Positions 6,559 through 63,192 of a DNA stretch of 64,000 nucleotides are shown here, piece after piece. The notes beneath the pieces were generated by a model. That model saw only the letters and a list, made by a program, of their open reading frames with translations. It was not told the DNA's origin and did no database searches. A program made the translations under genes and the position numbers. This DNA comes from Glycera tridactyla (lineage: Eukaryota): assembly GCA_965644265.1 (NCBI GenBank), contig OZ286471.1, positions 46,624,001 through 46,688,000 of the forward strand, in the 5' to 3' direction. How positions within the stretch are numbered: the first letter of the stretch is position 1; the number at the start of each line of letters is the position of its first letter.

Positions 6559-6783
6559 CTTTACCACCTCAATGTACTACCCCTGCACCATCATCGACAT
6601 CCCAGCCATCGACCACCACCGACCCCTGCTACACCATGACCATCAGTGGTCCAGCTGGCAGGGCACGTTGTGTTTTCCCATTTGAATATAAAGGTGTGAC
6701 ATACTGGGAGTGTTCAATCCTCGACAATGATCTCGAACTCTGGTGCTACACTGATAACGACGGCCAGTGGGGCAATTGTGGAC
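6559..6783 (+). CDS. FN2 exon E1
   Basis: tgtag|CT TTA...TGT GGA C|gtgagt, 225 nt; xLPPQC-linker-CYTMTISGPAGRARCVFPFEYKGVTYWECSILDNDLELWCYTDNDGQWGNCG; absent from the ORF track (no ATG). Confidence 0.85.
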
Positions 6784-9700
6784 GTGAGTCTCAATGTTTT
6801 TCCAGTTGATGTCATATGCTGTTCGTGTTGAATGTTGCATGAACATTTCTAAGCATGATCTACATTACGAAAACAAAACATTGGTATGAAAAGGGGTCGG
6901 ACCTTGTCTTTGCCAGTGTTGGTTTGACAATGACCTGGAATCAAATGTTCTGCCAATATACATCCACATTCAGTGCACCATGCATGATATTTTCTGTGAG
7001 TCACTGCATGAATAGTATATCGAAACACCTCCTAGTGGGAATTCATAAGCGACTGCTGCTACTACGAATGTTCTCAAGATGATTGGGCGAATATTCTCGA
7101 TAGATGGACATCACAATACATTGCTAATCCTTCTGGTTTTTGAATATGCGCAATATATGACATTTGCTGAAACATAGCTGTGGCGACCACTCAAAAATAA
7201 TCTTATGTTTGCTACAAAATTCCAGGTTGAATATCTCCCGTCATATTTGTGATTGACAGCCAAATCTGCAAAATGTTGGAAAGGCAGCGTCAATATCTGA
7301 TACCCAAATGTGATGGAATATCACCGAGGTGTGCGGATGGTGTCTTATCCGTAATACGTGAGCAAGTGAAATTAGGTAGAGGTGTGTTTGAACTGTCAGA
7401 TACTTCCACTTGACAACCTTTCAGGTTCCCCATCATCTTGTGAGAGTGATGTCTGCAGGGGAGAGAACATCTAGCTTCCATTAACCAGGAACACACGGCA
7501 TACATAATCCTGTGGGTTGATACATGCCGTAAAACCTAAAAAAAAAATGGCTATTCTATCAGAGATGTCTGCTCATATCGTTCACCCACATCATGCAGCA
7601 GCGATGAGGGATAAATTTTCTTCTCCGATTGAATTGAACCACCATACGAAATACCTCCACTCATTTATTTCATTGCACAATAAGTCAATACTATGACTGT
7701 ATAGTCTGTAGTCACAAAGATGCAGGGAGCAGATGCATGCTTCTTTCCAGTTTTCATCATGACATAGGAGTCAATATGCCTCTCGAGCATGCCACGAGGC
7801 ATTGCTGAGCTTCCGCCATGTATTTCAGCGATGGGATGGGGAGGGTGGATAGTGAAGTTACACACTAGAATATCTTGGAAGAGGCTGCTGCAGCCCGGCA
7901 GGTAAGTCTCAAGCAGATTTAGCTTGATAGTAGAATTATGCCGTGAGATGATACTCATGAAACGAACCAGCGAGGAAAACAACCAGACTTTTGGTTCAGA
8001 TAATGATGACAACCACTCCGAAGAATGCCTCTTAGTCTTCCGTTGTGTCGTGGGAAAGGGGGTATTCAGGGAAGGACGAAGGCAGGGGAGTCCGGATATG
8101 AGCCTGGAGTTCAAGCACTTGCGGTAATTCCTCCCAAAGTTCAAAGTTCAAACCACTTATAGCTTCGCTCTTAATGATGCACGCTCGTATGTGATAGTTG
8201 CACTGTTTTTGCCGCCGTTTGCCTATCTAATGCATATCAATTGCCACGCAGTTTTTAGCGCAACTGACCGAACAAGCACTCACTAAGCTTCCAAACACCC
8301 AAGCATGACGACAACTGCACGAGCCTCATCTTGACCTGTACAGGCATGCCTTTTTTGTGGTGTCCAGATTTGTTCATCTCGAATTGACTGCAGACACTCC
8401 CCCTTGTCTTGAATTGCTAGAGAATGCCATTCCAGATGTATATTTGATCAAAATATCTCAGCCATCGATGAAATATCTAATTTTGAATAAAATCACTGAA
8501 AATTTGAATGGAAAATTATTTGCTGGTGTTTTGTCCTAAGCTGGGATGCATTTGTAATGTCTTACATTTGCTTTCATTCTCTTCACTTTTAGCATCATGC
8601 TTGTGAAGGGTCTCCTGATTCTAGCCCGTATAGAGTATATATAATGGGATTGAAAGTATCTCATTTTCTTAATTCTAATATGATACGGCTTGATTTGAAG
8701 AGGCATTGTGTAGTACACAGCTAATCGGAAAATTCTGGACCAGTAGAATCAAATTTTGAGGGATCGCAATGATTCACATAACAAATAATTACTCATCACA
8801 TAGGGTCAATGAAGGAGCCTTCAGGTATGACCCACTCAGGTATGTGTATGTGTATTCGGTAACCTGGAATTAGCCACTTCTGCCCATGCACTCTTGGTGG
8901 TATACATCATGGGGAGATGTGAATGATACACATTTATAACACACTTGTTGCTTTGGAGCAATATCAGATCTAGAAATGATGCTTTGCATCTACATGTGAA
9001 CTTATTTGCTAACCAAAATCATGCCCTGACCACTTGCAGCCGAGATATGTGGCACAACTACAGATACAACTCCAACCACGGTCACCACCCCAACCACCAT
9101 TACTACTACCACAACCGAACCTCCTACCACTACCAATGACTGTTATACACCCACTGAAAGCGGGGAGAACTGTTTCTTCCCCTTTGTCTACAAAAACAGT
9201 GTCTATCGTGAATGCACCACTGCAGGCCACAACGGAGTCCTCTGGTGCTATACCCGGGCAACATTTGCTAGTGATGAGATTTGGTCAAACTGTTTAGGTG
9301 AGTCACCTTTCTCTTGCGTCCAATCTGTTATGTATGCCTCCAGTAATATATGCGATAATGAATGTCACCGTGGACCACTATTCAGAAGGAGGATAAGGAT
9401 CAAACCCCATCAAAATATTGTGGGTGGGGTGCATCTGCACTATCAGTAACGTCCACTCTACAGCGTTTCTGAATCCTCGTCGGCGTTTTATATTTGTGTG
9501 TAAAGTGCTTGGCGGGGACAATGCATATAGATCTCATGATATTGAAATATGCGGTAAACATGATCCCGTAAGTCGACACATGTCACTGAACGCCGACCAA
9601 TTCAATCCAATAAACAATCATCACAGTAGAATAATTTGCGACCCATGTGTGATTGAAGCCAATACCTCCATTCAGGCGGACTATGGCTTTCTATTCACCG

Positions 9701-12700
9701 TTCTAGGTTCTTTGATTGATCATAGAATGGAGCAAATAGCAAGTATGAATCAGTATCTGAATCCAATCAGACATAGCCTGTTTGAATCACTAATAGTGAG
9801 TTTGATCATATCGATGTGCCTTCTCATACCTTAATCATGTTACATTGCTAGTCATTCGGTTTTCGTGATTGAGATACCCTGAGCATTGAGACACGAGATG
9901 TGGTCGTCATATCCTCATCATTGAACTTTTAGATGAAGTCTGTGGAACAACTCCAACTGTTACAACTACTCTCCCAACCACAAGCACAACAACGGTCACC
10001 ACACCAACAACAACGAATAATTGCTATACACCGGTGGTCGATGGGACAGCGGATCCTGACTCGATTTGTTATTTCCCATTCGTCTATAAGAAAACCACTT
10101 ACTGGAAATGTAGCACAAAAAACAATCGTGACGTCCCTTGGTGTTATGTTGATGAGGACTTCAAAAAATGGGGCAACTGTCAAGGTAAAACCGGTTAAGG
10201 CTACTTTCCCTTAAATTGCATGCCAGCCGATATGCCCGGTTATTTTAGCGATGATGTGTACCAACTGCAACCATGCATTCACATAAGCTTCATTTTAGGT
10301 GAGCCCCCCACCACCATGACAGCTGAACTTGCACAGTGAACGTCTCTCACATATAAGGCTAATATTGCCCAACCATGAGAACTCACTGCAAAATGAGCTA
10401 TGGTACATCGACTGTATTACTCTTTCGAATTCAAGTTCAGAGTTGATAAATTGAATCATGCGGATGTGCTTTTTGCTGCAAACTCTAATCCTCGTTAAGA
10501 GGTAAATTCAGCAATTCGTATCAGAAGTTCGGAAAATGAAGTTCGGGGATTAGTCATTGCCAAGCTCAGATCTGTCTTATCAGCATCGAGATGGGGGGTT
10601 AAGCTTAGATCATTGTCAGAAATATCCCAATTATAACTCATTTTCCAACAGTTATATCGAGGAACATGATCATGACTTGTGTGATCTGTGAGATACCGCT
10701 GTGATAAAGGTGGTCTGAACTAGGTGTGATACCGTCAGTGAATACATGAGTGATTCTGTGAGAGGCTCTTGTTTAGTATGACGCTTGGTGACTGTTGTCA
10801 TTACTGCACTGGAACGAGTAAGCATGTTGCATGCTGTACATACATTTTCACACTGTCTTTTACTTCTATTACTGGTTTTTCCAATGCTCTTGTCTTTCGC
10901 TCCGAAACTGTATTCTCTTCTCAAGCTTACATCCTGAGACGCGGGTGAGTTCCCTTTTTCTTAATTTTCTGAGGTTAGAAACTCACATGGTAGTACGTGA
11001 TCGATTATATCTATACGAAACATATTTGTCACATCAAACCTACTGATCTGAGCTGACTTCGGCCACTATTCTGTCCTTCATGTATCAGCCCAAGATGACA
11101 CAATTATACTGGAGTAGACCCAGCATGATGTATAAGGGCGACGGGTATATTCCTGAAGAAGCGACACTCCTTCAGACATATTTGGCGATATTCCTGCTTA
11201 TCCAGGTTCATTCCATTGTATCTACTCCACCTTTCGGTGCACTTGAATGATTCAGGACCGTGGATCTGTCTAGTGACAAATACGAGAGTTGTAGTTTCTA
11301 TGTTGTCCAGGAAGTACTTGTATTTCCCTGGAGGCCGTAAGAAAAAAGCATCCGGACCAGTGGGAATTTTAGCAGTATGTCTTTGTCCCTGGTATAGTCA
11401 GCACAGTACCTTTTTTGAATGGAACTGGTGTATGCTCTGTGCTCTCGCTGTTAGAGAACATTGGCGGATGAATGGTGAAAGTTCTCATACACAATATGAT
11501 GTGCGCTGGTATCACTCATAAGGTGGGGTTCTGCATCTCCTAGTCCCTTAGGTACAAGATGAGATCTGTCATAATCCAAACGATTGCTCTACATGTGGGA
11601 TTAGAGAAAGAGAGAAAGGCTCATTCTTTGAACATTGAGTCATGAAGTAACATGGAATTAGGTTCATTTAAACGTGATGATTTCTTACAGCCGAGGAATG
11701 CCGTTCATTAGCCATTACATCAGCTACCACGGGATTACCTGCGACTACCGAGACCTGCTATATCAGCACTTTGGGAGGGTCAGCTCATGTCAGCTCCATC
11801 TGTTACTTTCCGTTCTTTTACAAGGGCATAATGTATACTGCCTGCTCTACCGAGGACAATCGGGGCATTCCCTGGTGTTATGTATCACCCGATTATGAGG
11901 ATGACCATTTGTGGGGCATCTGTGAAGGTATATATCATTGGGGTCCATTCCATGACTACAGAATGTCACCTTGAATATCCACATATGTGAATGGGAAAGT
12001 TTAGATTCCTATGCTTCCGAGTTTGAAAATGAAGAGTTTAAGGCTAAAATGTTCACATATTGTATTGTTGTCCAAATATGTAGTAGCGCTGGATGTTCCA
12101 AATGTTGCTTGAAAAAGACCGCTGGCAAAAGACTCAATTATCACATTTTATACATTTGTCCTTGACAGTGAATAGTGACATATTTCAAGGCTTGCCATTT
12201 TAGGAGATTTAGAAGGTTTAGAATGTTTGTCATTTGCTGTCCTTTTTCCATTGCTATTAAATGTCTTGGAATAGTTGCAGTGAAGAGAGATTAGTCACTG
12301 AAGTGACCAGTCAGTTCTCCTAGCTTTGGTGGAAAGTGAGGTTAATAGCTAGTCAGTGACCGTTTCGATGAGGTGGATTCCCCCCCCCCCCCCATTTCAA
12401 AAATATAGTGGTGATTCAAAGATAGTGAGTATTATGACCCATTTGCTTCATGTCGCTTGACATTATCTGAAATTCAATTAGCATATGCACCACCCTGTAT
12501 CCGTTCCAGGTGTGATATGTGACATCACATTTCCGATAACCACTGCTGCTGATGTAACAACAGCACAGACTACCACGGACCTACCAATCATAACGATCCG
12601 AGACTCATCAAGCATCACAACTCAGGCGAGCACACCAGAACTCTGTTTCACTTCCACAATTGGTGGTACAGCACCTGACTATTCTAGGTGTAACTTTCCT

Positions 12701-15700
12701 TTTTCATATAAGGGTGTTCAGTATGACTCCTGTACCATTGTGGATAATGGGCGTACCCCATGGTGCTACACATCAGAAGATCGTCAGTGGGGAAACTGTG
12801 CAGGTACATGTTCAAATTGGATTATTTTGACAGGCATGGGTGCTCAAACTCGATGCACATTTGGGAATTCAAAATGTGCATTTTTTGAAATTGATTTTCT
12901 AGTTAGATTTGGTGTATCACGCACCAAAGCGAGTGAGGTTTGATAGGATAGGTTCGAAAGCATGTGAAGTTTGTTTGTATAGGTCATATTGTTGGTCGTT
13001 CATCAATTTCATCATGTAGCGCACACCACACTCTTCAATTTGACGATATGGTTGTTTTTGTGAGGACTGTACCATATCTCTGAATACCAAAGAAAGTATT
13101 GTTTTAGCTGATTGTTTGTTCCGAAATGATGTTTATTTATATGAGTATTGAACCTCGTTCAATTGGCTAAAAATCGTAGTTTGGATTGCTATACACATTT
13201 CAACGTGTGGTCACTGGCCAGAACAGGATACTCACAGACTTCTCTATGCATTACAGATACAATATGTGGTCCATCTCCTCCGACTACCGACTCCTTGACT
13301 ACCACTGCTCAACCCTCATCCGAAATCCCTTTTTCAACTCAGGAATCAACCACATCCAGCACTGTGATGCAGTCCACCACAACTGAACAGTGTTATGTTT
13401 ATACGAGTGGTGGTACTGCTCCAGACAACTCTGTGTGTTTCTTCCCCTTTCTATATAAGGGTAAAGCATATACCGAATGTATCACACAAAATAACAGAGG
13501 AACGCCATGGTGTTACACATCATCCGATGATGGCAGTTGGGGAAATTGCCAAGGTATGGCTCATCCATGCGTATTCTAATTGAATGTGCATACGATCATG
13601 GAACTTTAATTGTTCGAGAGAGTAACAAATACACCATCTGAAACTGTCAGTCAGAAATGGGGATGGTTCGAATTTGGTCATTATTTCTGTATTATGAAGA
13701 AAAACGATGAATCATTAACTGCTTCACAAATAAAAGCAAGATCCCTGCATTATATCCTTTATTTACCAGCAATTCAACTTGGTATATTTCCATGGAGTTT
13801 GGTCGAAAACATTCAGGGATGGCTAGTGATATTATTCTTATGATAACAATATGATAAAAAAATTCTGTTCATCCAGAAAATAGGCTTGCTCATATTCACA
13901 ATTGCAATGGCCAATCTCTGTTTCATTCGCACTGATGGGAAAGACCAGTTATGGAAACATTTGGGAATGATTGTCACTAGTGTTCTATTGTAACCGAGTA
14001 CGCCCATCGCAGATTACTATGTGATCTTTTGCTAATTTACGACCTTTACAATGTATGAATACATCCTTTCCAGAGGAGGTCTGTGGGTCATTTGTAAGAA
14101 CACCAACTACAAATCTACCTACATCTAGAGAAACAACATCAAGCATATTGATTGAAACAACATCAAGCATATTGACTGAAACGACACCAACACTTGAACT
14201 CAGTACAACAACAAAATCCACGACGAGGTATCATACTACTTTGCTGACCACAGAAGCAGGGACACCTTTGCCTTCCTACTTCAAGCCATGTGTCACCCCC
14301 ACAAGTGGGGGTACAGCAGGGGGCTCCATATGTCTATTCCCTTTCCGCTACCGTGGACGTACCTTCTCCAGTTGTACTGCTCAAAATAACGATGGAGTGG
14401 CATGGTGCTACACAGTGCCAAATGAAGCCGGTGATAGCTTATGGGGGAATTGTCTAGGTAGGTAGGATTCACATATTCAGATATAATCAGTGAATGCTGT
14501 GCTATATAATATAGAGGGAGATCAGGGTAGACATGTGAGTATGGGTATAGTTTTTGCTAGAAGTCAAGTGATACTGGGTAGTTCGAATTTAATAACTGGC
14601 GGAAAAAGGTTCAACATCTTCAAGATGAGAGCCACTATCACAGGAAAGATTGGTAGTGTCAATACACATATTTTTCTGCTCTATACCTGAAATATCAAGA
14701 GTGTTGACTTGTATAGTCGAGTCAATTCAGAGGAGACTCTCCATATGTTTATGTTGAGACATGAATGTCAGCAGAAAGACCTCAAATCATATGCTTAAGT
14801 AGAGGGATTATGTAGAAAGGTTATGGAAGAATACAATCTTGTATGTTGCCCATTTTTATTCTTTCAGAGGAGACCTGCTGCTATACCCCTGCACTGGGTG
14901 GCACAGCAAATGTAGGCATCTGTCTATTCCCGTTCACGTATAAGGGTAGAACATACAGCAACTGTGTGACCAGGGATAATGGAGGCATTCCTTGGTGCTA
15001 CACATCCTCCTCCTACAAGGAGGACAAGTTATGGGCAAACTGCAGAGGTAGCGATTTTCATACGATCAATTCGATTAGGAAACCGAAAAAAATGTAGAGA
15101 TTATATCCATCAAAGATACACATGAAATATTATCCATGCTCGAGTATTCAGATATCAACAGCATGCTGTCCACCAAACCATATCAACCATAAATGTGTGA
15201 TTTCACTCATTTCTTCACCCTTGCTAATGAAGGCCTCGGTTTGACCACGGATCTGTGAAAATAGCCAATTTCCACAACTGTGTTGAAAATGTCATTCGTA
15301 GAAATAGACTTATCTTTTGTCTACCCTACTCAGGACGAACATAGACAATACATTTAACATACAGTCGAACCTCCACTGACGACCACCTCCATAGAGCAAC
15401 CAACGCCTCGTAACGACCACCCATGACCGGCACCGACGTCTTTCACAGCATATTTGACCTCTATATAGCAAACACCTCCCAACTTCAACCAGCGACCGCC
15501 GTGTTTGGTTGGCGAACCTCCCAATAACAACCGCTCATGGCCGGGCAGCCAGCATCGCGGTATCCGAAAGCAGGAGATGCACTCAAACCCTGTTCGCTCG
15601 CGCTCACCTTCCGCTGCCAATCACTTACCCCTTCCAGTAGCCGCCTCAGCTCCACGTGAGACTTTGAAATGCGCTCAGATGCTCACTTGCTCAGCACAGC

Positions 15701-22261: not shown

Positions 22262-22292
<31 letters not shown>

Positions 22293-52200: not shown

Positions 52201-55200
52201 ACAATGATGGAGTACCTTGGTGTTATACAACTGATACACCAAAATCAGATCGCCTATGGGGCAACTGTCAAGGTAGATTCTGAACATTCAATTTCACCAA
52301 AAGTTCATAACAAACTAATGCACGATATTGAATCTATCATTGCACAAGCAGTTATAATACCGAATCGAGTACTAACGAATGTGGCTGTGGGAAGGATAGT
52401 GGTATACATAAACTGATGGGCAGGACCTCGTAAGGTCTTGATCACATGCTTGAAGGTTCGGGCATGGAACATCACTTTGTTGTCACTAAACTTGTGATAA
52501 ACTCAATGGTAGAAGTGATGATGGTGAAGGGTATGCACTGGTGACCACCACTTCCATCATGCCAGAAGTGGAAAAAAGGAAGCAATGTATTGGGTCAAAT
52601 CCTTGACTGCCAATGTAGCTCAGTATATACTCGGTGATTTATCCATAGTGAACGTGCTGGGTGAATGAGGATTGATCAGGAAATTGATTGAACCTTTTCA
52701 ATCAAAGCAAGTGGTGATATTATTCCAAATAGAGCAAATTGTATGTGTATACCAAACAATTAGCCTTCATTCTACACTTGCTTCTATTCATACCAAGTTG
52801 TGAATAAAGTTATATCTTGAAATGACCGTTTTTCTGAATATGCATATTCAATACATTGCAGATAAAGTCTGTGAATCACTCCCACCTAGGATATCAACCA
52901 CACCCTTGACAACCTCTCTTCCCAAAACTTCATCAGAGCCGAGCCCACTTCTAACAGTTCATAACAAACTAATGCACAATTTCACATGTATTATTGCACT
53001 AGTAGGTACACTAAATTGATTACTATTCAGAATTGCTTTCGAGATAGATGTATGGATACTTGGGCTAGTGTATACTAGGAAACAGTCACGTCTTTATCAC
53101 ATGCTCGAAGGCCACCACAAGGGATTTGTGGTGATGGTAAAGGGTATGCACTTCCAACAAGCAATGTCATTTTGTAACAAACCTATGAAATGCAGCAGAT
53201 TGTATGCTTTAAAAACCTAAATTCCCATATGATTCAGTATATAATTGGTGAAATACCTATAGTGAATGTGTTGGGTGGATAAAGATTGAATAGAAAATTC
53301 ATCTAACCTGTTCAATCAAAGCAAGTGGTAAAAGGTTTACAAATGGGATAAATTGCATGCGTATACAGAACAATTGACCCTCATTTCACCCTGGCTTTCA
53401 TACTATCTTTAGAAATTATTACAGGAACAGTGATGAGTGTATATCTGGAAATAACTATGTTCAATGAAGAATTTTATCAGGTGTTTGAATATATATATAT
53501 ATGTGATACATTGCAGAACAAGTCTGTGGATCACTCCCACCTAGGATAATAACCACAACCTTGACAACCTCAGTGCCCACAACTTCATCAGAGCCGAGCT
53601 CACTTCAGACAGGAGCATCAACAGTCACGGATCAGTTCTGCTATATTCCTACAGAAGGTGGCACTGCTGGCAGATCTATGTGTTACTTCCCTTTCTCATA
53701 CAAGGGAAGTGTACATTATGATTGCATCATTCAGAACAATGATGGAGTACCTTGGTGTTATACAACTGATACACCACAATCAGATCGCCTATGGGGCAAC
53801 TGTCAAGGTAGATTCTGAACATTCACTTTCACAAGGATTTCATAACATACTAATGCACAATATCACATGTATCATCGCACTAGTAGCTACACTAAATTGA
53901 TTACTAATTATAATTGCTTTTGAGAGAGATGTATGCATACATGGACTAGTGTATAGTAGGAACCATCCACATCTTTATCACATGCTCAAAGGCCACCACA
54001 CGGGATCACTATCACTTGTCAGTTCATCAACATACTTAACTGATAATGTGTTGAGAGGGGTTAGTGGTGATCGTGAAGGGTATGCACTGGCAACAACCAA
54101 TGCCACCATGTAACAAACCTATGAAATACAGCAGATTGTATGCTTTAAAATCTAAATTCCCATATGATTCAGTATATAATTGGTGAATAACCTATAGTGA
54201 ATGTGTTGGATGGATAAAGATTAAATAGAAAATTCATTTAACCTGCTCATTCAAAGCAAGTGGCGATAAGGTTTACAAATGGAATGAATTGCATGCGTAT
54301 ACAGAACAATTGACCCTCATTTCAACCTGGCTTTCATACTATCTTTAGAAATTATTAAAGGAACAATGATGAGTGTATATCTGGAAATAACCATGTTCAA
54401 TGAAGAATTATAGCAGTTGTTTGAATATGTATATGCGATACATTGCAGAACAAGTCTGTGGATCACTCCCACCTAGAATAACAACCACACCCTTGACAAC
54501 CTCAGTGCCCACAACTTCATCGGAGCCAAGCTCAATTTCAACAGGAGCATCAACAGTCACGGATCAGTTCTGCTATATTCCTACAGAAGGTGGCACTGCT
54601 GGCAGATCTATATGTTACTTCCCTTTCTCATACAAGGGAAGTGTACATTATGACTGCATCATTCAGAACAATGATGGAGTACCTTGGTGTTATACAACTG
54701 ATACATCAAAATCAGATCGCCTATGGGGCAACTGTCAAGGTAGATTCTGAACATTCAATTTCACAGGAAGTTCATAACAAACTAATGCACGATATCAAAT
54801 CAATCATTGCACAAGTAGTTAGGCTAAATTGAGTACTAATGAGTGTGCTTGAAGATTACAGCATGGAACCACACTTCGTTGTCACCAAACTGGTAATGGA
54901 TTCTTTGGTTGGTGGGGTGATGGTGAAGGGTAGGCACGAGTGACCACACTTCCATCATGCCAGAAGTGGGAGAAATGAAACGATTTGTGGTGTCGAATCC
55001 CGACTTCCCATGTTGTTCAGTATATATTCGGAGAATTACCTATAGTGAACGTGCTGATATTTTTTTCTTAAAATTGATTTGACTCATCCGATCAGAGCAA
55101 GTGGTGATATTGTTTCCAGAAAGAGCAGATTGATTGCATCTACCAAAAAATGACACTCACCCTTGCTTCTTTTCATACCATCTTTTATCAGAGAGACACA

Positions 55201-58200
55201 GATGAAGGTATATCTTGACACGACCATGTTCAATAGAGTATTACACCAGTTTTCTGAAATATCCACATGCAATACATTGCAGATCAAGTCTGTGGATCAC
55301 TCCCACCCAAGATAACAACCACACCCTTGACAACTACTCTGCCGAAAACGTCATCAGAGCCAAGCTCACTTTCAAGAGGAGCATCAACAATCACGGACCA
55401 GTTCTGCTATATTCCTACAGAAGGTGGCACTGCTGGCAGATCTATATGTTACTTCCCTTTCTCATACAAGGGTAGTGTCCATTATGACTGCATCATTCAG
55501 AACAATGATGGAGTACCTTGGTGTTATACAACTGATGCACCAAAATCAGATCGCCAATGGGCCAACTGTCAAGGTAGATTTTGCATATTCTATTCCACAA
55601 GGATTTAATAACAAACTAATGCACAATATCAAATCGATCATTGCACAAGTAGTACTGAATTGAGTACTAACGAATGTGGCTATGTGAAAGACAGTGGTAT
55701 ACATAGACATACAGGGTGAATGAGAATTGATCAGGAAATTGATTGAACCTTTTCAATCAAAGCAAGTGGTGATATTGTTTCCAAATAGAGCAAATTGTAT
55801 GTGTATACCAAACAATTGGCCTTCATTCAACATATGCTTTTATTCATACCTTCTTTAAAAATTATCAAAGAACCGCCGATGAAGGTACATCTTGACACGA
55901 CCATGTTCAATGGAGTATTACACCAGTTTTCTGAATATGCATATGCAATACATTGCAGATCAAGTTTGTGACAACCACATCCTTGACAATCACTCTGCCC
56001 TCAACTTCATCAGAGCCAAGATCACTTCCAGCTGGAGCGTCACCAGTCTCACATCAGGTCTGTCATATCACCACAGAAGGTGGCACTGCTGGCAGATCTA
56101 TAAGTTACTTCCCTTTCTCATACAAGGAATGACTGCATCATTCAGAACAATGATGGAGTACCCTGGTGTTATACCACTGATACACCAAAAACAGTTCGCC
56201 TATGGGGCAACTGTCAAGGTAGATTCTGGACATTCAATCCCATGACAAGTCGATAACATGCTAATGCACAATATCAAATCTATTGGTGCACGAGTAGCTT
56301 CATTTGAATCGAGTACTAACAAATTTGACTATGGGAGAGATGGATGTATGCTTGGACTAGTTGGTAGGAACCAGCTACGTCTTTATCACCTGCTTGAAGG
56401 TTGTTCTACATACATCTTGCCAGTTGATCTTTATTATCACTGGCAACCACCAATGTCATCATGCTTCGAACCTGTGAAATTCAGCAGTATATATGTTGTT
56501 AAAACCTGACTGCTCATGGAGTTCATACTCACGAGGAAAATTCTTGATATTCAATCAAATGCATGGGATAATTTGTGATATGATATCAGATTGCACAAGT
56601 AATCACGCTGAAGTCAGTGCTGATAAGTGCCATATCAATCATGGAATTTAATTGCACTATGCACTGATTTGCGAGACTTTTATGTATGACCGAGTCATGA
56701 TGGAGTTCCTTCGTTTTACTGAAGCAGGATGCACATCTTTATCAGCCAGATATTTTCTTCCCAATGTGGTTGAAGCTTAATTTTCCACATTTGCTAAATT
56801 TGATAAAAATGCATGGCCTGTGATGACAATTTTTAATGGCTCATTTTAAACTGCGAATGAATTTGATTATGCTTACAGAAGAAGTATGTGGTCCACTTTC
56901 AACACAGATTATTACAGCCCCAGTGACGTCACCCCAACTGACCTCAGAATTGACAGCTGCATCAACAGTCACTGAAGAGTATTGTTTCATCCTCACATCA
57001 GGAGGAACATCTGGGCGATCAGTTTGTCTGTTCCCTTTTACATACAGGGGGGAAGTTTACACTACCTGCACACCAAAAGATAACAATGGAATACCATGGT
57101 GTTACACGTCCAATTCACAATATGGCCGTCTATGGGGCAACTGTGAAGGTAGAGTTTACTTCCCTGATACATAGCACCAGAATATTCGGGTAGTATTTGG
57201 GTAGGAGTTGACATATTCAGTCAATACGTCTGGCTTTTTTTATTGAAGATCCTCATCGACACTCTTCACAGAATAATTTAATTAATTCAGGAATTCGAAG
57301 ATCCAGCAATAATGGTACATACAGGTACATTGTCCAGCGCAATTTCATGAATAAAAGGCCAGCACTAAGGTGAAGTAGAGCATTCATCATTGGAAATAAT
57401 CCCCGCACCTCCTCTTGGCATATTATTGCCAACTGAGCGTCGGACTTATTTGTAATATTTATACCTTCATGATGATATATCTGATGGATAGATTGTGACG
57501 TATGCTAATTTGGTAGCATGAGCAGGTCATCATCGCTGACATGATTTTCTGTCATGAATTCTATGATGACGGAACAGTCATGTTTCATTCTAACATCTGG
57601 AGGAACAGCCAGGAGATCAGTCTGTCTGTTTCCTTTCGCATACAGAGGGAATGTTTACACTACCTGTACAACGAAAGATCATGATGGAATATCATTGTGT
57701 TACACAACCAATATCCAAAATGGTCGTCTTTGGGGCAATTGGGAAGGTATAGACCTGAAACCATATCACATGCATTTAGTGAACTGTTCATGCTATTTCT
57801 GTAGAGTAGATGAATAATACTTTGTTACCTTGAGTCAATTGACTACGCATCATCATATGATAGATACAACGATCTAATAAGTTGATGATGCATAGACAGG
57901 AAGGATCTCAAGTGTGCTTTCAAATTAATTGATGAAGTGAAGTTCAGGCTTCCACCATCGATACCAATATAATGATCGCTCGAAATAGGAGTCTGGGTTC
58001 ATGACAGAAGTGTGTGCTATGCTACTCTTCCTTGTCCTCTTCTATATATAGGGGAGAGAGCTTACTATTTGAATGATTTCTCGAACAACAAATAATGCAC
58101 CAATTTACTCAGTTGAAGAAGTAGGAATATTATGAATCTGGAAGGATTGTTTGCGAAAACTAATCGAATCAAGATGTGATACTATTGGTGCTATCATGAC

Positions 58201-61200
58201 TATCGAATTATTGGAATTGGCGATGACAGGTGGTGAGTAATGTCCATGATTGTAAATCCCCATAGATCAGTTCAAATTATGAAAGCATTGATTTTCTTTT
58301 GCAGAGGAAGTATGTGGTTCACTTCCGACTGACATTAGTACCACTACAGTGATCTCGGCTGGACCAATAACTACTGACACCGTGGTGGTATCCACCATAA
58401 CGAACGAGTTGTGTTTCGTCCTCACGTCTGGGGGAACAGCTGGAAATTCAATTTGTTTGTTCCCCTTTGCATACAAAGGAGATGTTTACACGGCTTGTAC
58501 ACCGAAAGATAACAATGGGATACCATGGTGTTATACCACCAGCATACAGAATGGGCGTCTGTGGGGAAATTGTGAAGGTAGAGAGTTTATTTCAATAATT
58601 TTGTGCCAATATCGTGCTCTGGGAAGGGGGATTGGCATGATCATTCTTTTGATATATAACAATTTCACCATCAGCTTCATAAGAGTACAAGGGATATCCT
58701 GATCACTATGAGTGCTGTTATCCCTAAATCATGTATTATCGATATCTGTGTTGTGGAGTGTGATAATGAAGTTAGCAGTCACATCATTTTGTCCTTTAAA
58801 AAAAAATCATCACCACCATATCAGAGAAAGCATTTATGAATCCGTCAGATAAGTGTTCATTCAGATATATTTTATAGCATTGTGATCAGGGGTTAAGGTT
58901 GAAGCCATTGTTTGCTGATGCCTTGCATTGTAGAGGAAGTGTGTGGCACTTTACCAACAGCATTGAATACGACTCCTCCAACACCGACACAGACGACACC
59001 AGCATCGACTGTTACGACTGAGTTTTGCTATACATTCGCATCAGCAGGAACAGCTGGCACATCAGTCTGTGTCTTTCCCTTCTACTACAAAGGCAATCAA
59101 TACAGTGATTGCACAACACGCGACAATGATGGTGTGCCTTGGTGTTATACAACTCGCTCACCTGAGACTGATCACCTTTGGGGAAATTGTGAAGGTAGAC
59201 GTCAAATAGACTTTAAACTCACATCAGTGTGTTTGTTTCCATTTGACCATTTTGGCATAATGAATAGGCCTATTCGACTAGTCGGTTTCGTTGAGTATGG
59301 CCAGTCCGTTGACTACGTTCTGTATAAGGGTAGTTGCCCAACACTTTTTCGATGCGTACGATCTCAACGGTCATTTGACTACATTGATCTCATTAAACGA
59401 ATCCTATTCGGGTTGGCTACGACCGTTGAGTACATTTCTGCAATGAATACTCAATGGAAACTGAACAGTCAAATAGGCCTAATATTCGTTAATGCTACAG
59501 ACAGCTTCAAACTCAACCTTGGGCAGTCTGTTTTGAAAATGCGTTTCAAAGATTTGGCACTCGTCACCATGTAGAATTTGGAGATCATTACCATCGAATC
59601 TGTTGCTGGGATATGCCCGCATGAGTGGATGAGCGAGGTTGAGTCTTTGGTGACTATCCTTCTAGATTGACATATGTAGAGCAGCATATTATGTCCTCCC
59701 GGAAAATTTGAATCCAGGGTTAGGAGCAAGAATGAAAACCATCTGTCTTCGGTCATGTGTTACTAATATCATCCTGATGAAGTCGGAGATAGCTAATTTA
59801 TGGCTATTCCAGTGTCAGTACTGCTAAAGGCAGGTGCAAAGAACAACCTCACGTAGTGTTTGGAACTGCAACTGGTTCCACCAGGAAATGCTATAGCAGT
59901 GTACTGCAAGCAAAGAACAGGGGTCAATAACTGTATTTTCCAAATATCAGCCAAAGCGTGGAGGAAGCTACCCTTGCACGAACGTCAAAATGCATCTAGT
60001 CACCTGCCAGTCTGCGTTCCGATTCTCTTGAAAGTGATACTGGCGGCCCTCAAAGGTTCGAGACACATGACGTGTATGATCCCAAGGATTGATATATCCT
60101 GAAACACCAGCCGATTGACCCAAATTCTTCTGTTATGGACCTCTGGCTTTTTTTCAGAACAGGTCTGTGGGTCACCACCACCAGAATTAACCACGTCGTT
60201 CATGAGCCAAACCTCAACAGATTCAACCAGCTCACATTTGTCATCAGCACAATCGACATCAACTTCTGCTCTGACACTGACCCCTTCCTACTGCTTTACA
60301 CCAACATCTGGGGGGACAGCAGGCAGCTCAGTCTGCACGTTCCCTTTCTCATACAGAGGGAATGTCTATGATGAATGCACGGCCCGCGACAATAATGGAG
60401 TTCCTTGGTGCTACACAACAAGTTCACCTCAGACTGATCACCTATGGGGAAACTGCGAAGGTAGATGAGCGAGATGATTTGTATTCTTTTCCTTAAATGA
60501 TTGTGTTCTGTGTCATAACAAGAATAAGGGAACAAAATAAAAAAAAATGTCCTTGTGTTCTTCCCATTCAAGTCCGATAAGTGATTGAATCATGATGGTG
60601 GGGTGAAGATTGATGTGAGGACAAAACGATCACCCGAATATCCAAAACTCATTGCAGAGCCCAATAGAGACGTGTGCGATTACATGTGACAGGCACGCTG
60701 GTGTTTGGATATGCTAACAGTCATTTTACATGCCCAAACGATCAAGTTTGTCTGCATTGCTGAGGACAATCACCGATCGTCAAATATTTGTTGCATGCCA
60801 ACCTAATAATTTGGTGATGAAAAATGCCCGATCATGTTGATAAGCTGGGTGGTTGCTCACAGTGAGTGACTGATGCGAAATTCTACTATACAAATTTATA
60901 TAGTAAGACAGAACTCATTGGTACGGACTGATGCATCTGCATGGTGTATACTTTCATCAAGAATAACTGATTCTGTTCTTCAATTCTCTTTCTTTGGTGC
61001 GATCTAATTTTCGTTGCTGAATTTGTCCATAGCACAATCATTTCTTTAAAAATACAATGAATCATTTCCAGATGAGGTTTGCTGTTATGGAACACCAACA
61101 ACTGGAGGAACAGCTGGGGAGTCATACTGTGTATTTCCCTTCTCATACAGAGGAGCCACTTACGACGAGTGTACAACGAGAGATAATGAAGGGTTGCTAT

Positions 61201-63192
61201 GGTGTTATACCACTGAGGGCCCGGATCCACTTTGGGGATATTGCCTAGGTACTGCTGCATTCGATCTTAGACCTCGCCATTCCTTCTCACCTTTTTCTTG
61301 TACCGTGCCGTTATCAACAGCTGCGAAATTCTCACTATAATATCGCTGGATCGATGCCTCCATGGTCCTGATCACCTCACACATTAAACGATCGCATTTC
61401 ATTTCTATCCATTCCATGTTACTGCATAATTTGCAACCTCTGGGTCGGCTTGCCCCTAGTTGTCAGTGATTTGGTAATAGGATGATGGATCTCTTTGGGG
61501 GTGCCGTGAACTTATTGGATCTTCTCGCCGAGGTACCCTTGCCCCTTACATATAGTTCACTTTGCAACTCATTTCCATTCCTCAAAGCCACAAGGTCGTC
61601 TATGAATTCTTTATTTGTAATCCCTATCTTGATACAGTTTTCCATATGATTCTTTCATGTCTCGTGATCCATTGCTGATTTCCATTTTTGTGAATGTGGA
61701 TTTCAGCTGATCCATGTGCCACCAACATCAGCACCACATCAACATCTACAAGTACTGCAAATCCATCTATAACTGCATCCACCCCACAGGAGTCATCAAC
61801 AGTGTCACAAATTGCATCTAGCACCACCACATCTGCAACATCAACTTCAATGTCAACATCCATGTCCGCATCTACAGTCACTCAACAATTTTGCTATATT
61901 CCAACAAATGATGGGACATCAGGCGAGTCCATATGTGTATTTCCATTCTGGTATAAGGGGAACAGATACGATACCTGCATCACCCGAGACAATGGTGGAG
62001 TTCCATGGTGCTACACTACCGAACCCGGAATGGATCGCCTCTGGGGCAACTGCGAAGGTACATAACTACATGTCACACTAAAATGGAACACGAACTTGTC
62101 CATCGTTCTCGATTAAAAATGCATCCTTTTTCACCTACTTGTTTCTATGTAACTTATCAGAATACATCCCAAACTATTCCACATTAGGTTTGGATTGTTG
62201 GAAGAAATGACTCTCTTTATGAATTATACATTCATTCTAGGCATACAGGGAAAAATTGATTTCGTACAGGTGAATGTCTCGATGTATCCAACGTATTGAC
62301 AATCAGACCAGAAGGTACTTTCTAACGATACCACATCCCTGATATACATCCCATGAGTTCCCGAGGTGTCTATTTGGACTCATTGACCATCACATCTCAG
62401 TTTTCGTGGCAAAATCACAAACAGTCCCATGAAAATCCTTATCTGTGGTCTCATTTGTATTGGATTATATGTGTGAGAGGTGCTGTCGAGGTATATCACC
62501 ATCGAAAAATGCACCCAGTTAAGCAAATTACTGATCGCAAAGATTGATCTGCATTGTCCTGTGGCGGGAATCAATTATATGGTACCTTGGACTGAATAGT
62601 ATATGTAGATATCAAACACCCTTATCTAGGTGATGAAACCACACATTTCCTTTTGTAATTGTATTAAACGAACAATTGATCATCACCGTCCTGACATCCA
62701 GTTCGGGATATTTGTTGATGGGTAGATATATAGACCTCAGAGCCATATGGTAATTCTATTGTTCCCACCAGTATTCGTATCCGTTTTTGTTATGACAACC
62801 TGTATTTTGGGTTGGAAACGTGTAAAGGTCTAGCTTATGAATAATATGAACGTTCTGTTATGAATTTGTTCACATTTCAGAGGAGGTATGTGGTTCCCCT
62901 CCGCCGGAAATTACCTCTAGCACAATCAAAGTGTCAATGCAATCGCCAGACATTACTACTAGTTCTTTAAGACCATCAGTGCAATCAACTACGCTACTGG
63001 CAACATCATCCTCGACATCGGACTCATGTTTTATTTCCACAATAGGTGGAACAGCAGGCAACTCAATATGCATGTTCCCATTCAAATACAGGGGTACGGT
63101 CTATATTGATTGCACAACACGTGATAATTACGGAGTTGCGTGGTGTTACACAACAAATTCCGGGACTGATCGATTGTGGGGAAATTGTCAAG
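6559..63192 (+). CDS. Partial giant multi-exon gene: tandem FN2 (six-Cys, kringle-like) modules separated by Thr/Ser/Pro mucin-like linkers; 43 intact exons, about 4,028 codons
   Basis: 43 segments each bounded by a pyrimidine-rich AG acceptor and a GT donor, all phase 1-1, all lengths multiples of 3, no in-frame stops. Each carries the FN2 pattern C-x-F-P-F-x-Y-x-G-x-x-Y-x-x-C...W-C-Y-T...W-G-N-C. Splicing was inferred by eye with no transcript evidence. Start and stop exons were not found. Confidence 0.85.
9040..9297 (+). CDS. FN2 exon E2
   Basis: ttgcag|CC GAG ATA TGT...TGT TTA G|gtgagt, 258 nt; EICG-poly-Thr-CYTPTESGENCFFPFVYKNSVYRECTT...LWCYT...IWSNCL. Confidence 0.9.
   Translation, partial: PRYVAQLQIQLQPRSPPQPPLLLPQPNLLPLPMTVIHPLKAGRTVSSPLSTKTVSIVNAPLQATTESSGAIPGQHLLVMRFGQTV
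9933..10184 (+). CDS. FN2 exon E3
   Basis: ttttag|AT GAA GTC TGT...TGT CAA G|gtaaaa, 252 nt; CYTPVVDGTADPDSICYFPFVYKKTTYWKCST...PWCYV...KWGNCQ. Confidence 0.9.
11691..11927 (+). CDS. FN2 exon E4
   Basis: cttacag|CC GAG GAA TGC...TGT GAA G|gtatat, 237 nt; ICYFPFFYKGIMYTACSTEDNRGIPWCYVSPDYEDDHLWGICE. Confidence 0.9.
12510..12803 (+). CDS. FN2 exon E5
   Basis: ttccag|GT GTG ATA TGT...TGT GCA G|gtacat, 294 nt. Confidence 0.9.
13257..13553 (+). CDS. FN2 exon E6
   Basis: ttacag|AT ACA ATA TGT...TGC CAA G|gtatgg, 297 nt. Confidence 0.9.
14074..14457 (+). CDS. FN2 exon E7 (EVCG type)
   Basis: tttccag|AG GAG GTC TGT...TGT CTA G|gtaggt, 384 nt. Confidence 0.9.
14868..15047 (+). CDS. FN2 exon E8 (linkerless CC type)
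   Basis: tttcag|AG GAG ACC TGC TGC TAT...TGC AGA G|gtagcg, 180 nt. Confidence 0.9.
16165..18972. mobile_element. Non-autonomous foldback DNA transposon, IS3EU-like ends, with internal satellite arrays
   Basis: 99-bp perfect TIRs (TATGGAACGCCATTGGGGAC... / ...GTCCCCAATGGCGTTCCATA). GAAACC is duplicated at 16159-16164 and 18973-18978. No substantial ORF. An alternative reading is a 4-bp TSD (AAAC) with ends at 16164/18973. Confidence 0.85.
16646..18700. repeat. Satellite inside the foldback element: 256-bp units x2, then 150-bp units x5-6, then inverted copies
   Basis: The AAATCAGGCCAGCCCATGGTGCTGCC anchor (TAATC... in two copies) starts at 16646, 16902, 17158, 17308, 17458, 17608, 17758 and 17908. 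Reverse-complement units begin after about 18040. Confidence 0.9.
19292..19714 (+). CDS. FN2 exon E9 (longest linker)
   Basis: tttgcag|AG GAA ATA TGT...TGT TTG G|gtacgt, 423 nt. Confidence 0.9.
20065..20244 (+). pseudogene. FN2 pseudo-exon psi1 (decayed CC type)
   Basis: ENRCYRPVIGGTVDQGISYSHLKYKGDTQYTCAIRDSAGVP*CYTTETYQTDRIWENCL: TGG>TAG stop, first FN2 Cys lost, acceptor reads tttcaa| and the donor is lost; 180 nt, same as E8. Confidence 0.85.
20757..21068 (+). CDS. FN2 exon E10 (EVCG type)
   Basis: ttgcag|CT GAG GTC TGT...TGC ATA G|gtactc, 312 nt. Confidence 0.9.
21513..21686 (+). pseudogene. FN2 pseudo-exon psi2 (CC type) with in-frame TAG but intact splice sites
   Basis: atttcag|AT GAA ATA TGT CGC...TGG TGT TAG (21644-21646)...TGT CTA G|gtatat, 174 nt; EICRGMVTYGGTDGEGYCLFPFFRRGTTYDACTTHDNYGVLWC*TMTTAPRPWGNCL. 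Confidence 0.85.
22192..22578 (+). CDS. FN2 exon E11 (DPC type)
   Basis: ttttgtag|CG GAT CCC TGT...TGC CGA G|gtgatc, 387 nt. Confidence 0.9.
23191..23672. mobile_element. Putative MITE with imperfect TIRs and internal ACTCTCCCG repeats
   Basis: Left CAGTCTTC...AGCCACTCTCCCG matches the reverse complement of the right end CGGGAGAATGGCT...GAAGACTG. About six (A/C)CTCTCCC(G) motifs lie inside. No clear TSD. Confidence 0.4.
23848..23990. other. Assembly gap (143 N)
   Basis: Run of N. Confidence 0.99.
25181..25411 (+). CDS. FN2 exon E12 (VCG type)
   Basis: ttacag|AT CCA GTA TGT GGA...TGC ATG G|gtaaat, 231 nt. Confidence 0.9.
25922..26098 (+). CDS. FN2 exon E13 (linkerless CC type)
   Basis: tttcag|AG GAA GTC TGC TGC...TGT TTA G|gtatca, 177 nt. 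Confidence 0.9.
   Translation, partial: RKSAALALPLMVVLLGTLCVYSPSHTGEPHLTAAPHETMMGFPGVTRQKETADFGGTV
26570..26845 (+). CDS. FN2 exon E14 (DPC type)
   Basis: ttgcag|CT GAT CCA TGT...TGC CGA G|gtattt, 276 nt. Confidence 0.9.
27840..28103 (+). CDS. FN2 exon E15
   Basis: tttcag|AT TAT TGT GGA...TGT GGA G|gtatga, 264 nt; the only junction giving C-x3-C. Confidence 0.88.
29399..29455 (+). repeat. tRNA-Ala-like SINE head or tRNA pseudogene fragment
   Basis: A-box-like TGGCTGATTGG, then CATGCTTCGCATGT (resembles the tRNA-Ala CGC anticodon arm), then B-box-like GGTTCGAAT; no acceptor stem. Confidence 0.4.
30528..30878 (+). CDS. FN2 exon E16 (ICG type)
   Basis: gttgcag|AG AAG ATA TGT GGT...TGT TTA G|gtaatc, 351 nt. 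Confidence 0.9.
31500..31676 (+). CDS. FN2 exon E17 (linkerless CC type)
   Basis: ttttcag|AT GAG GTA TGC TGT...TGT CTA G|gtatac, 177 nt. Confidence 0.9.
32169..32339. other. Assembly gap (171 N)
   Basis: Run of N, just upstream of the 4.4-kb triplication. Confidence 0.99.
32478..32822 (+). CDS. FN2 exon E18 (DPC type, copy A1)
   Basis: tttcag|AG GAC CCC TGC...TGT GAA G|gtagat, 345 nt. Confidence 0.9.
35189..35497 (+). CDS. FN2 exon E19 (EVCG type, copy B1)
   Basis: ttacag|TG GAG GTA TGC...TGC CAA G|gtaact, 309 nt. Confidence 0.9.
35982..36158 (+). CDS. FN2 exon E20 (CC type, copy C1)
   Basis: tttcag|AG CAG GTG TGC TGT...TGT CTC G|gtacat, 177 nt. Confidence 0.9.
36893..37237 (+). CDS. FN2 exon E21 (DPC type, copy A2)
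   Basis: Same boundaries as E18, 345 nt. Confidence 0.88.
39601..39909 (+). CDS. FN2 exon E22 (EVCG type, copy B2)
   Basis: Same boundaries as E19, 309 nt; G>S and I>V relative to B1. Confidence 0.88.
40394..40570 (+). CDS. FN2 exon E23 (CC type, copy C2)
   Basis: Same boundaries as E20, 177 nt. Confidence 0.88.
41305..41649 (+). CDS. FN2 exon E24 (DPC type, copy A3)
   Basis: Same boundaries as E18, 345 nt. Confidence 0.88.
44005..44313 (+). CDS. FN2 exon E25 (EVCG type, copy B3)
   Basis: Same boundaries as E19, 309 nt. Confidence 0.88.
44797..44973 (+). CDS. FN2 exon E26 (CC type, copy C3)
   Basis: Same boundaries as E20, 177 nt. Confidence 0.88.
45720..46019 (+). CDS. FN2 exon E27 (DPC type)
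   Basis: ttttcag|AG GAT CCA TGT GCC...TGT GAA G|gtagat, 300 nt; CFIPTSSGSAGNAICVLPFRYKGTTYNECTTRDNNGVSWCYTT...LWGNCE; FN2 frame absent from the ORF track. Confidence 0.9.
47471..47761 (+). CDS. FN2 exon E28 (D1)
   Basis: ttgcag|AG CAA GTC TGT...TGT CAA G|gtagat, 291 nt. Confidence 0.9.
48305..48595 (+). CDS. FN2 exon E29 (D2)
   Basis: ttgcag|AT CGA GTC TGT...TGT CAA G|gtagat, 291 nt. Confidence 0.9.
49139..49429 (+). CDS. FN2 exon E30 (D3)
   Basis: As D2, 291 nt. Confidence 0.88.
49973..50263 (+). CDS. FN2 exon E31 (D4)
   Basis: As D2, 291 nt. Confidence 0.88.
50806..51096 (+). CDS. FN2 exon E32 (D5)
   Basis: As D2, 291 nt. Confidence 0.88.
51982..52272 (+). CDS. FN2 exon E33 (D6)
   Basis: ttgcag|AA CAA GTC TGT...CAA G|gtagat, 291 nt. 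Confidence 0.88.
52862..52956 (+). pseudogene. Pseudo-exon psi3 (D7): FN2 core and donor deleted
   Basis: Intact acceptor and DKVCESLPPRISTTPLTTSLPKTSSEPSPLLT, then a direct jump into downstream-intron sequence GTTCATAACAAAC; about 226 bp missing relative to D8. Confidence 0.85.
53517..53807 (+). CDS. FN2 exon E34 (D8)
   Basis: ttgcag|AA CAA GTC TGT...CAA G|gtagat, 291 nt. Confidence 0.88.
54449..54739 (+). CDS. FN2 exon E35 (D9)
   Basis: ttgcag|AA CAA GTC TGT...CAA G|gtagat, 291 nt. Confidence 0.88.
55283..55573 (+). CDS. FN2 exon E36 (D10)
   Basis: ttgcag|AT CAA GTC TGT...CAA G|gtagat, 291 nt. Confidence 0.88.
55959..56218 (+). pseudogene. Pseudo-exon psi4 (D11): frameshifting deletions, splice sites intact
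   Basis: 260 nt (not a multiple of 3). There are deletions after TGT G and within TACAAGG...ATGACTGC, and the first FN2 Cys codon reads AGT. Confidence 0.85.
56879..57148 (+). CDS. FN2 exon E37
   Basis: cttacag|AA GAA GTA TGT...TGT GAA G|gtagag, 270 nt. Confidence 0.9.
57554..57746 (+). pseudogene. Pseudo-exon psi5: no phase-compatible acceptor, core residues lost
   Basis: CFILTSGGTARRSVCLFPFAYRGNVYTTCTTKDHDGISLCYTTNIQNGRLWGNWE: last Cys>Trp, conserved W>L, EVC head and linker absent, in-frame TGA at 57542. Confidence 0.75.
58305..58577 (+). CDS. FN2 exon E38
   Basis: tttgcag|AG GAA GTA TGT...TGT GAA G|gtagag, 273 nt. Confidence 0.9.
58934..59194 (+). CDS. FN2 exon E39
   Basis: ttgtag|AG GAA GTG TGT...TGT GAA G|gtagac, 261 nt. 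Confidence 0.9.
60158..60460 (+). CDS. FN2 exon E40 (VCG type)
   Basis: ttttcag|AA CAG GTC TGT...TGC GAA G|gtagat, 303 nt. Confidence 0.9.
61072..61248 (+). CDS. FN2 exon E41 (linkerless CC type)
   Basis: tttccag|AT GAG GTT TGC TGT...TGC CTA G|gtactg, 177 nt; FN2 frame absent from the ORF track. Confidence 0.9.
   Translation: MRFAVMEHQQLEEQLGSHTVYFPSHTEEPLTTSVQREIMKGCYGVIPLRARIHFGDIA
61707..62057 (+). CDS. FN2 exon E42 (DPC type)
   Basis: tttcag|CT GAT CCA TGT...TGC GAA G|gtacat, 351 nt. Confidence 0.9.
62881..63192 (+). CDS. FN2 exon E43 (EVCG type)
   Basis: tttcag|AG GAG GTA TGT...TGT CAA G|gtagat, 312 nt; the open donor means the gene continues beyond this exon. Confidence 0.9.

Follow-up and report, generated by a model that had tools for sequence, protein, structure and literature searches.

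How can a gene built from dozens of copies of one disulfide-rich module gain, lose or skip copies without leaving cysteines unpaired? FN2 is the textbook two-disulfide, collagen- and ligand-binding module, and the argument that it descends from kringles dates back to 1984. In the window, by which is meant the whole 64,000-nucleotide stretch of Glycera tridactyla DNA analysed here, a long run of exons encodes one FN2 core apiece, and with each core come two cysteines more than the four that FN2 needs. Where are the partners of these two, and does their presence make the module something other than FN2?

The exon array and its reading frame

Scanned in all six frames with a regex motif, the window gave 43 FN2 cores, on the forward strand only and distributed over all three of its frames. 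A profile built from these 43 cores found 4 further units, one being an intact exon and the other 3 decayed pseudo-exons. Labels E1 to E43 stem from the regex and E27b from the profile, so that 6559-63192 (forward) holds 44 intact-looking FN2 exons, stop-containing E11 included, together with the 3 pseudo-exons; the count refers to the sequenced letters, and the N gaps at 23848-23990 and 32169-32339 may hide exons or repeat copies. Below, C1 to C4 are the core cysteines, Ca is the first in-frame cysteine of an exon, Cb the one preceding its core, and Ca' the Ca of the next exon; x4 or x3 gives the number of residues between C4 and Ca'.

6559-6783, forward: E1, first FN2 exon in the window; Ca codon at 6573, 14 nt past the acceptor AG (atypical), Cb codon at 6627; fn2 match at E 2e-8
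9040-9297, 9933-10184, 11691-11927, 12510-12803, 13257-13553, 14074-14457, 14868-15047, forward: E2 to E8, phase 1-1, six cysteines each, x4 junctions
14868-15047, forward: E8, linker absent, Ca and Cb adjacent (14876, 14879)
19292-19714, forward: E9, longest Ca-Cb gap, 81 aa
20070-20240, forward: pseudo-exon between E9 and E10, a decayed FN2 matched by the profile in two pieces; C1 lost, a stop replacing the Trp before C3
20757-21068, forward: E10, Cb 16 residues before C1
21513-21686, forward: E11, defective exon; in-frame stop after C3 (WC*T), Cb replaced, CR instead of CC
22192-22578, forward: E12, six cysteines, Ca-Cb gap 69 aa
23848-23990, no strand: run of N (assembly gap 1) lying in the E12/E13 intron (22579-25180); the 400 nt on each flank are free of FN2 motifs
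25181-25411, 25922-26098, 26570-26845, 27840-28103, 30528-30878, 31500-31676, forward: E13 to E18, of which E14 and E18 are linker-less (CC)
32169-32339, no strand: run of N (assembly gap 2) lying in the E18/E19 intron, ending 139 nt before the E19 acceptor
32478-32822, 35189-35497, 35982-36158, forward: E19 to E21, first 4.4-kb unit, E21 linker-less (CC)
36893-37237, 39601-39909, 40394-40570, forward: E22 to E24, second 4.4-kb unit, E24 linker-less (CC)
41305-41649, 44005-44313, 44797-44973, forward: E25 to E27, third 4.4-kb unit, E27 linker-less (CC)
45720-46019, forward: E27b, intact six-cysteine exon whose core starts CVLPF; profile score 99 bits, usual acceptor and donor rules
47471, 48305, 49139, 49973, 50806, 51982, 53517, 54449 and 55283 (starts; each +290, to 55573), forward: E28 to E36, nine 291-nt exons, a tandem family with a unit of ~0.83 kb
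56055-56217, forward: decayed pseudo-exon of the E28-36 family; C1 lost, frameshift at ~56127
56879-57148, forward: E37, six cysteines, x4 junction
57575-57739, forward: decayed pseudo-exon of E37/E38 type; Trp before C3 changed to Leu, C4 to Trp, stops in the linker
58305-58577, 58934-59194, 60158-60460, 61072-61248, 61707-62057, 62881-63192, forward: E38 to E43, six cysteines each, x4 junctions
61072-61248, forward: E41, linker-less, with CC at 61080 and 61083

The lengths of all 44 exons are multiples of 3 and, with boundaries predicted from the sequence, every one is phase 1-1. All donors follow one scheme, in which C4 and a single further codon are succeeded by G|GT (phase 1), while the acceptor AG is exactly 8 nt before the first in-frame cysteine codon in 42 of the 44 (the offset is 14 in E1 and 5 in E16). 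Forty-three exons are open with intact splice sites. As all are phase 1-1, and as both gaps are intronic with normal splice sites on their flanks, the reading frame is independent of the N gaps.

On splicing, 42 of the 43 predicted junctions read W-x-x-C-x4-C, with x3 at E15/E16 alone, where the E16 acceptor is 5 nt before Ca. The original prediction had 41 of 42 and placed an exceptional C-x3-C at 'E14/E15'. This is the E15/E16 junction in the present numbering, and the tallies differ because, evidently, E11 was skipped and the exon at 45720-46019 counted in the prediction. Its other observations on the cysteines recur here. Ca, expected in the first few codons, is the third full codon in all 44 exons (though its offset from the AG differs in E1 and E16). 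Cb, expected 9-16 and usually 13-14 residues before the core as C-Y or C-F, is present in 43 of 44, having been lost in E11, and has Y or F after it in 36 of these 43; its distance to C1 is 13-14 residues in 41 of them, 9 in E2 and 16 in E10. The core motif C-x9-W-C-Y-T is likewise seen in the exon alignment. Spliced units thus have six cysteines in 43 of 44 cases, and divergent exons (45-69% identical) keep the full six. Invariant across 37 distinct exons are C18, F20, P21, F22, Y24, C32, W42, C43, W55 and C58.

What separates Ca from Cb is far less constant. The gap ranges from 0 to 81 residues, being 0 in seven exons (E8, E14, E18, E21, E24, E27 and E41), and the linkers, which total 1,466 residues, are free of any other cysteine to an extent far beyond chance. 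With 29% Thr, 20% Ser and 10% Pro, no cysteine and variable length, they have the characteristics of mucin-like PTS spacers, and from this composition they are presumably O-glycosylated.

Is the x4 spacing a product of splice-site choice? An exhaustive profile search identified P0148 (GCA_013332675.1) as the closest relative, whose second core closely resembles that of E3. The genomic contig of P0148, L001 (JAAUYI010003260.1 of that assembly), has two six-cysteine FN2 modules in one exon at 318-781. The acceptor there is the same as that of the window gene (cag|AA CCG GTT TGT GG) and the donor is read through, TGC GAA G|gtaaat. P0148 shares the x4 junction of the window gene, but the inter-module intron is absent from its genome: no intron separates the two units and the DNA reads C4-L-D-K-V-C-G uninterrupted. 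Accordingly x4 is a real feature of the protein and not an artefact of splice-site choice, and the presence of an intron at this site varies between lineages.

E1 also has two cysteines before its core, and for its Ca-like cysteine no partner was identified; should no coding FN2 exon precede E1, that cysteine would be left unpaired. A search upstream of E1 in the window for a leader or signal-peptide exon gave none, apart from one weak candidate at 2417-2486 inside a transposon-like stretch. The minus strand there (1423-3555) has ORFs of 294, 172 and 162 aa that look transposon-derived. GDSL/SGNH-like matches of the 294-aa ORF are all sub-threshold, and an indexed search for its homologues found none. 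At about 4050-4250 there is a (CA/TG)n-type microsatellite, which reads as Cys-Val / His-Thr repeats in the list of ORFs. No RNA family was found in an Rfam scan of the window.

Turnover within the array

From 32478 to 45719 a three-exon unit of 4.4 kb (E19-E27) is present three times, its copies about 98% identical. When these are aligned the exons mismatch at 0.32% versus 2.4% for introns, i.e., exons are 7.5 times more conserved, and to judge by that difference selection is visible in them. Gap 2 is at the upstream edge of the repeat, and so the copy number there is uncertain. The nine one-exon units of ~0.83 kb that contain E28-E36 (47471-55573) have nearly identical cores and varying linkers. 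Exons of this young family differ more than its introns do, 4.7% versus 2.7%, because the mucin linkers change fast; the raw counts of nonsynonymous and synonymous codon changes are 116 and 118 for the module against 229 and 142 for the linker.

What of E11? Its sequence is that of an exon that may be dying and skipped, and if it is skipped the frame is preserved and E10 joins E12 with x4 spacing. The three decayed FN2 pseudo-exons in introns point to birth-and-death turnover within the array. The 4.2-kb E8/E9 intron has weak profile matches every 150 or 256 nt at 16600-18000, indicative of a tandem satellite.

FN2 or kringle

Does the third pair of cysteines mark a departure from FN2 towards the kringle? 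The original prediction took the module to be a six-cysteine FN2/mini-kringle, perhaps an FN2-kringle intermediate, and proposed scoring the junction-spanning unit against the profiles of both families. Five intact exons match Pfam fn2 (PF00040) at 34-52 bits, versus a gathering cutoff of 22.2, over model positions 1-42 of 42; E is about 1e-8 to 5e-14 for exon translations, and no other Pfam family matched. Even E11, read as far as its stop, has 22.9 bits over model positions 1-26. Pfam Kringle (PF00051) gave no match at E<=10 with the exons or with the complete six-cysteine (Cb-to-Ca') units of relatives, and for the latter fn2 is the sole Pfam match. When profiles of the module were run against PDB sequences, the FN2 modules of MMP-9, MMP-2 and fibronectin scored E 1e-38 to 1e-45, and kringles E 4e-4 to 2.6 over the C-terminal half only. 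Nor do the flanking cysteines improve the kringle scores, which are E 4e-4 to 0.7 without them and 0.006-2.6 with Cb and Ca' added.

Folds were compared by way of models of P0148, a relative ~40-50% identical to the window's modules. Its AlphaFold model superimposes on FN2 1J7M with Z 9.4 and rmsd 1.6 A over 58 of 60 residues (VIA-align). Against solved FN2 modules in general its models reach a Foldseek target TM of 0.85 and VIA-align Z of 8-10, while the best kringles (3E6P_L, 2HPQ_P) have Z 2.0-2.2 and rmsd about 5 A.

A kringle is about 80 residues long, has C1-C2 near 20 residues and a long C2-C3 loop, and pairs its cysteines 1-6, 2-4 and 3-5. The Cb-to-Ca' unit is about 62-64 residues, with Cb-C1 13-14 and C1-C2 13, and its inner disulfide pairs are assumed from FN2 homology. 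What the window gene has in common with kringles (of plasminogen, apolipoprotein(a), prothrombin and neurotrypsin) is the C-x4-C ending, the P-W-C-Y-T core and the putative C1-C6 topology; it differs in length, 62-64 versus ~80 residues, and in having 13-14 residues from Cb to C1 where kringles have ~20 from C1 to C2. With the FN2 modules of MMP-2/MMP-9, fibronectin, PDC-109/BSP and the mannose-receptor family it shares the full-length fn2 match, the four core cysteines, the aromatic FPF/Y/W/W cluster, and a gene plan in which each phase 1-1 exon holds a single module. Unlike them it has two extra strictly conserved flanking cysteines, the sixth cysteine on the next exon, mucin-like spacers, 44 modules within the window by itself, and a W-C-Y-T motif in place of the W-C-A/S/G-T found in most FN2. 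To our knowledge, all described FN2 have only two disulfides (four cysteines) per module.

By every test applied, Pfam, PDB sequences and the modelled fold of a relative, the module is FN2, and the status of FN2/kringle hybrid or mini-kringle is not supported. The original prediction's intermediate finds no support, given a Pfam match to fn2 only, Z 8-10 for FN2 against about 2 for kringles, and relatives that are mostly x3. Its further proposal, that the duplicated unit is a circular permutation of the structural unit, is supported in that exon and structural unit are most likely offset but too strong as to permutation, for only the last 4 residues of the module are on the next exon. The kringle INTERMEDIATE reading is unlikely (no Kringle HMM match, Z about 2, x4 not general, Cb-C1 13-14 versus ~20). 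What the window encodes is a genuine FN2 domain, belonging to a kind with two extra cysteines that is widespread among invertebrates. FN2 and kringle are nevertheless relatives, members of one SCOP kringle-like superfamily, and the relationship between them is established (PMC8373733).

Partners of the extra cysteines

The pairing to which the cysteine layout and the models of a relative point is that of Cb with Ca', the Ca of the next exon, in an outer third disulfide that would clasp each FN2. It is probable, though short of secure. The original prediction's central idea, an outer disulfide using a cysteine of the next exon, emerges as the most likely pairing on account of the linker-less exons, the range of gaps, the ends of related arrays and the relative's models. 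In the seven exons where Ca and Cb are adjacent a bond between them would be a strained vicinal disulfide, whereas under the clasp they merely mark the place where one module stops and its neighbour begins. A Ca-Cb gap of 0-81 residues with no other cysteine is the behaviour of an inter-module linker, not of a loop closed by a disulfide.

Where does an array of such modules start and stop? If cysteines pair across the core, an end of the array should betray it, and database arrays with two cysteines per inter-core segment were examined for cysteines before their first and after their last FN2. With both array classes (see below) pooled and several close Lepeophtheirus paralogues included, one cysteine precedes the first unit in 9 of 14 testable N-termini, and one lone cysteine, often the final residue of the protein, follows the last unit in 20 of 23 testable C-termini. 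The clasp class and the coral arrays give opposite end patterns, and so the test discriminates a clasp from an N-terminal loop. In class A, the clasp type as defined here, Ca' is 1-7 residues after C4, Cb is 7-15 before C1, and the Ca'-Cb gap is variable (2 to 79 in the database arrays); its members are Lepeophtheirus and Caligus proteins, P0020 and P0135. In class B there is a fixed C-x8-C abutting C1, with two extra cysteines before the first unit and none after the last; its members are from the corals Acropora, Oculina, Stylophora and Pocillopora (P0035, P0050, P0086, P0106, P0126). With x4 (x3 once), Cb at 13-14 (range 9-16) and a gap of 0-81 aa, the predicted cysteine layout of the window gene is that of class A.

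The copepod arrays (Lepeophtheirus salmonis XP_040577333, XP_040579601 and XP_040579517; Caligus) resemble the window gene in having Ca' soon after C4, a Thr/Pro-rich linker of variable length and an upstream Cb; their first unit is preceded by a single Cb, and their last is followed by a single Ca'. They differ in being x3 with Cb 7 before C1, versus x4 and 13-14, and in having 3-9 modules. Their annotations are uncharacterised, 'MMP9-like' or 'epididymal sperm-binding protein 1-like'. The coral arrays (Acropora muricata XP_067041766, Oculina patagonica XP_078375989, Stylophora/Pocillopora 'fibropellin-like') also have two extra cysteines per FN2, but in the fixed C-x8-C and with neither after the last unit. 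By this arrangement the coral class probably has an N-terminal mini-loop, not a clasp, and as an FN2 subtype it appears to be undescribed. Closest in layout to the window gene are P0148 and P0020, with Cb 13-15 before C1 in a G-G-T/N-x-G arm and Thr-rich linkers. P0020 (Logan SRR14460572 transcript, 975 aa) has a signal peptide, 6 FN2 and C-terminal PAN/apple-like domains. Unlike the window gene it is x2-x3, and at two places a single Cb and a single Ca' enclose a pair of FN2 cores with a Cys-free middle linker, so that one clasp may extend over two modules. An index search with P0148 for an annotated product returned P0148 itself and one weak match only. Among 162 six-cysteine units of relatives the C4-to-Ca' spacing is x3 in 111, x4 in 25, x2 in 18 and x5 in 8, and a fuller look at array proteins revealed x1 and x7 too. 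As far as these sequences go, the kringle-like x4 is not general among six-cysteine FN2 arrays, most related units being x3.

The AlphaFold model of a single P0148 unit has a pLDDT of 86.8, with values below 50 at residues 1-3 and 66-68 only, Cb being residue 4 and Ca' residue 65. A register of i+j=69 relates its strands 9-11 and 57-60; if these are antiparallel, as we infer them to be in the model, residue 4 would face residue 65. The two-unit model has the same register (19+80 = 24+75) and disordered linkers. At Cb and Ca' themselves pLDDT in the P0148 models is moderate, roughly 70-80 as estimated from block means. In FXII FnII the Zn sites use both flanks of the module but involve two different ions, and the closeness of N- and C-terminal arms receives weak support from this.

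Even with a clasp accepted, was it inherited? The module would then be a true evolutionary intermediate, its outer disulfide retained from kringle C1-C6, a mini-kringle on the way to the four-cysteine FN2 of vertebrates. The topology is the same, the window gene has the C-Y/F start, the P-W-C-Y-T core and the W-x-x-C-x4-C end, and six-cysteine FN2 in cnidarians and arthropods implies that the form is old. In addition, once Ca' is in the profile the weak kringle alignments reach the last kringle cysteine (2PK4 46-80), and the weak structural match to prothrombin kringle 2 covers model residues 4..66. However, the absence of any Kringle match at E<=10, the failure of Cb and Ca' to better the kringle E, Z about 2 for kringles versus 8-10 for FN2, and 13-14 residues where kringles have about 20 make this reading unlikely. 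Relatives have x1 to x7 after C4, x3 being commonest, and the coral subtype places both extra cysteines differently. This variable spacing and coral placement make the flanking cysteines look evolutionarily labile, with independent gain at least as likely as inheritance. The related proposition, that clasp-type six-cysteine FN2 is the ancestral form, keeping the kringle C1-C6 bridge, and that the four-cysteine FN2 of vertebrates was derived by loss, is likewise doubtful.

Should Ca and Cb of one exon instead pair with each other, the mucin spacer would be closed into a loop and a normal four-cysteine FN2 left. Cysteine parity per exon is satisfied equally by this, and the coral subtype does appear to pair its two extra cysteines together upstream of the core. 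It would need a vicinal Cys-Cys disulfide in seven exons, though, and an unconstrained gap of 0-81 aa is quite a contrast to the coral loop type, where the gap is fixed at 8 residues. In arrays with the window gene's layout a single Cb comes before the first unit and a single Ca' after the last, and in the P0148 models it is the linkers that are disordered and the Cb and Ca' arms that are ordered, so that such a loop is improbable. Little probability attaches either to the extra cysteines being free, or linking separate chains into a polymer in the manner of gel-forming mucins, even with a mucin-like product and an E1 whose extra cysteine has no identified partner. Gel-forming mucins polymerise via terminal domains and not via every repeat, about 88 unpaired cysteines at strictly conserved positions close to every domain would be unusual, and the lone terminal cysteines of relatives sit exactly where an intramolecular partner exists. 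Might the array simply be decaying and non-functional, with a cysteine pattern that reflects recent duplication only? The stop in E11, three pseudo-exons and many young exon copies could be so construed, but the idea is scarcely credible given 43 open exons with intact splice sites, six cysteines kept in exons only 45-69% identical, a 7.5-fold greater conservation of exons over introns within the 4.4-kb units, and module codons that change less than linker codons.

The window probably covers the 5' end region of a very large gene, whose product would be a beads-on-a-string glycoprotein, presumably secreted. Each predicted exon encodes, in order, what would be the last four residues of the preceding module ending in Ca, a spacer of 0-81 residues, the arm that begins with Cb, and the FN2 core. 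In the predicted spliced protein each FN2 is flanked by a Cb 13-14 residues upstream and by the Ca of the next exon 4 residues downstream. With Cb and Ca' as partners, the clasp would tie together the N- and C-terminal arms in the topology of the kringle C1-C6 bridge, each bead being a closed six-cysteine knot and the spacers lying outside every disulfide loop. Since the aromatic pocket is conserved, the beads may still bind ligands as FN2 modules usually do, and a role of the protein in matrix or mucus may be envisaged. Since a symmetric exon brings one closing and one opening cysteine, its tandem duplication, deletion or skipping, or an unequal crossover, would keep both frame and cysteine pairing, and such gain and loss fits the expansion of the array and its pseudo-exon debris.

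A literature search for six-cysteine or three-disulfide FN2 found nothing relevant, and a conserved third disulfide of kringle topology in invertebrate FN2 appears to be undescribed in the literature searched. If the clasp is real, the boundaries of FN2 in domain databases would shift, as the Pfam model stops at C4, and it would bear on the order of events in the evolution of kringles and FN2. Were the six-cysteine form to prove ancestral, it would be a missing step in the descent of FN2 from kringles, with the window gene as its largest living example. For the animal, the product of the host gene is probably a major component of matrix or mucus. The rule of one closing and one opening cysteine per symmetric exon would let a disulfide-rich array grow, shrink and be alternatively spliced without an unpaired cysteine.
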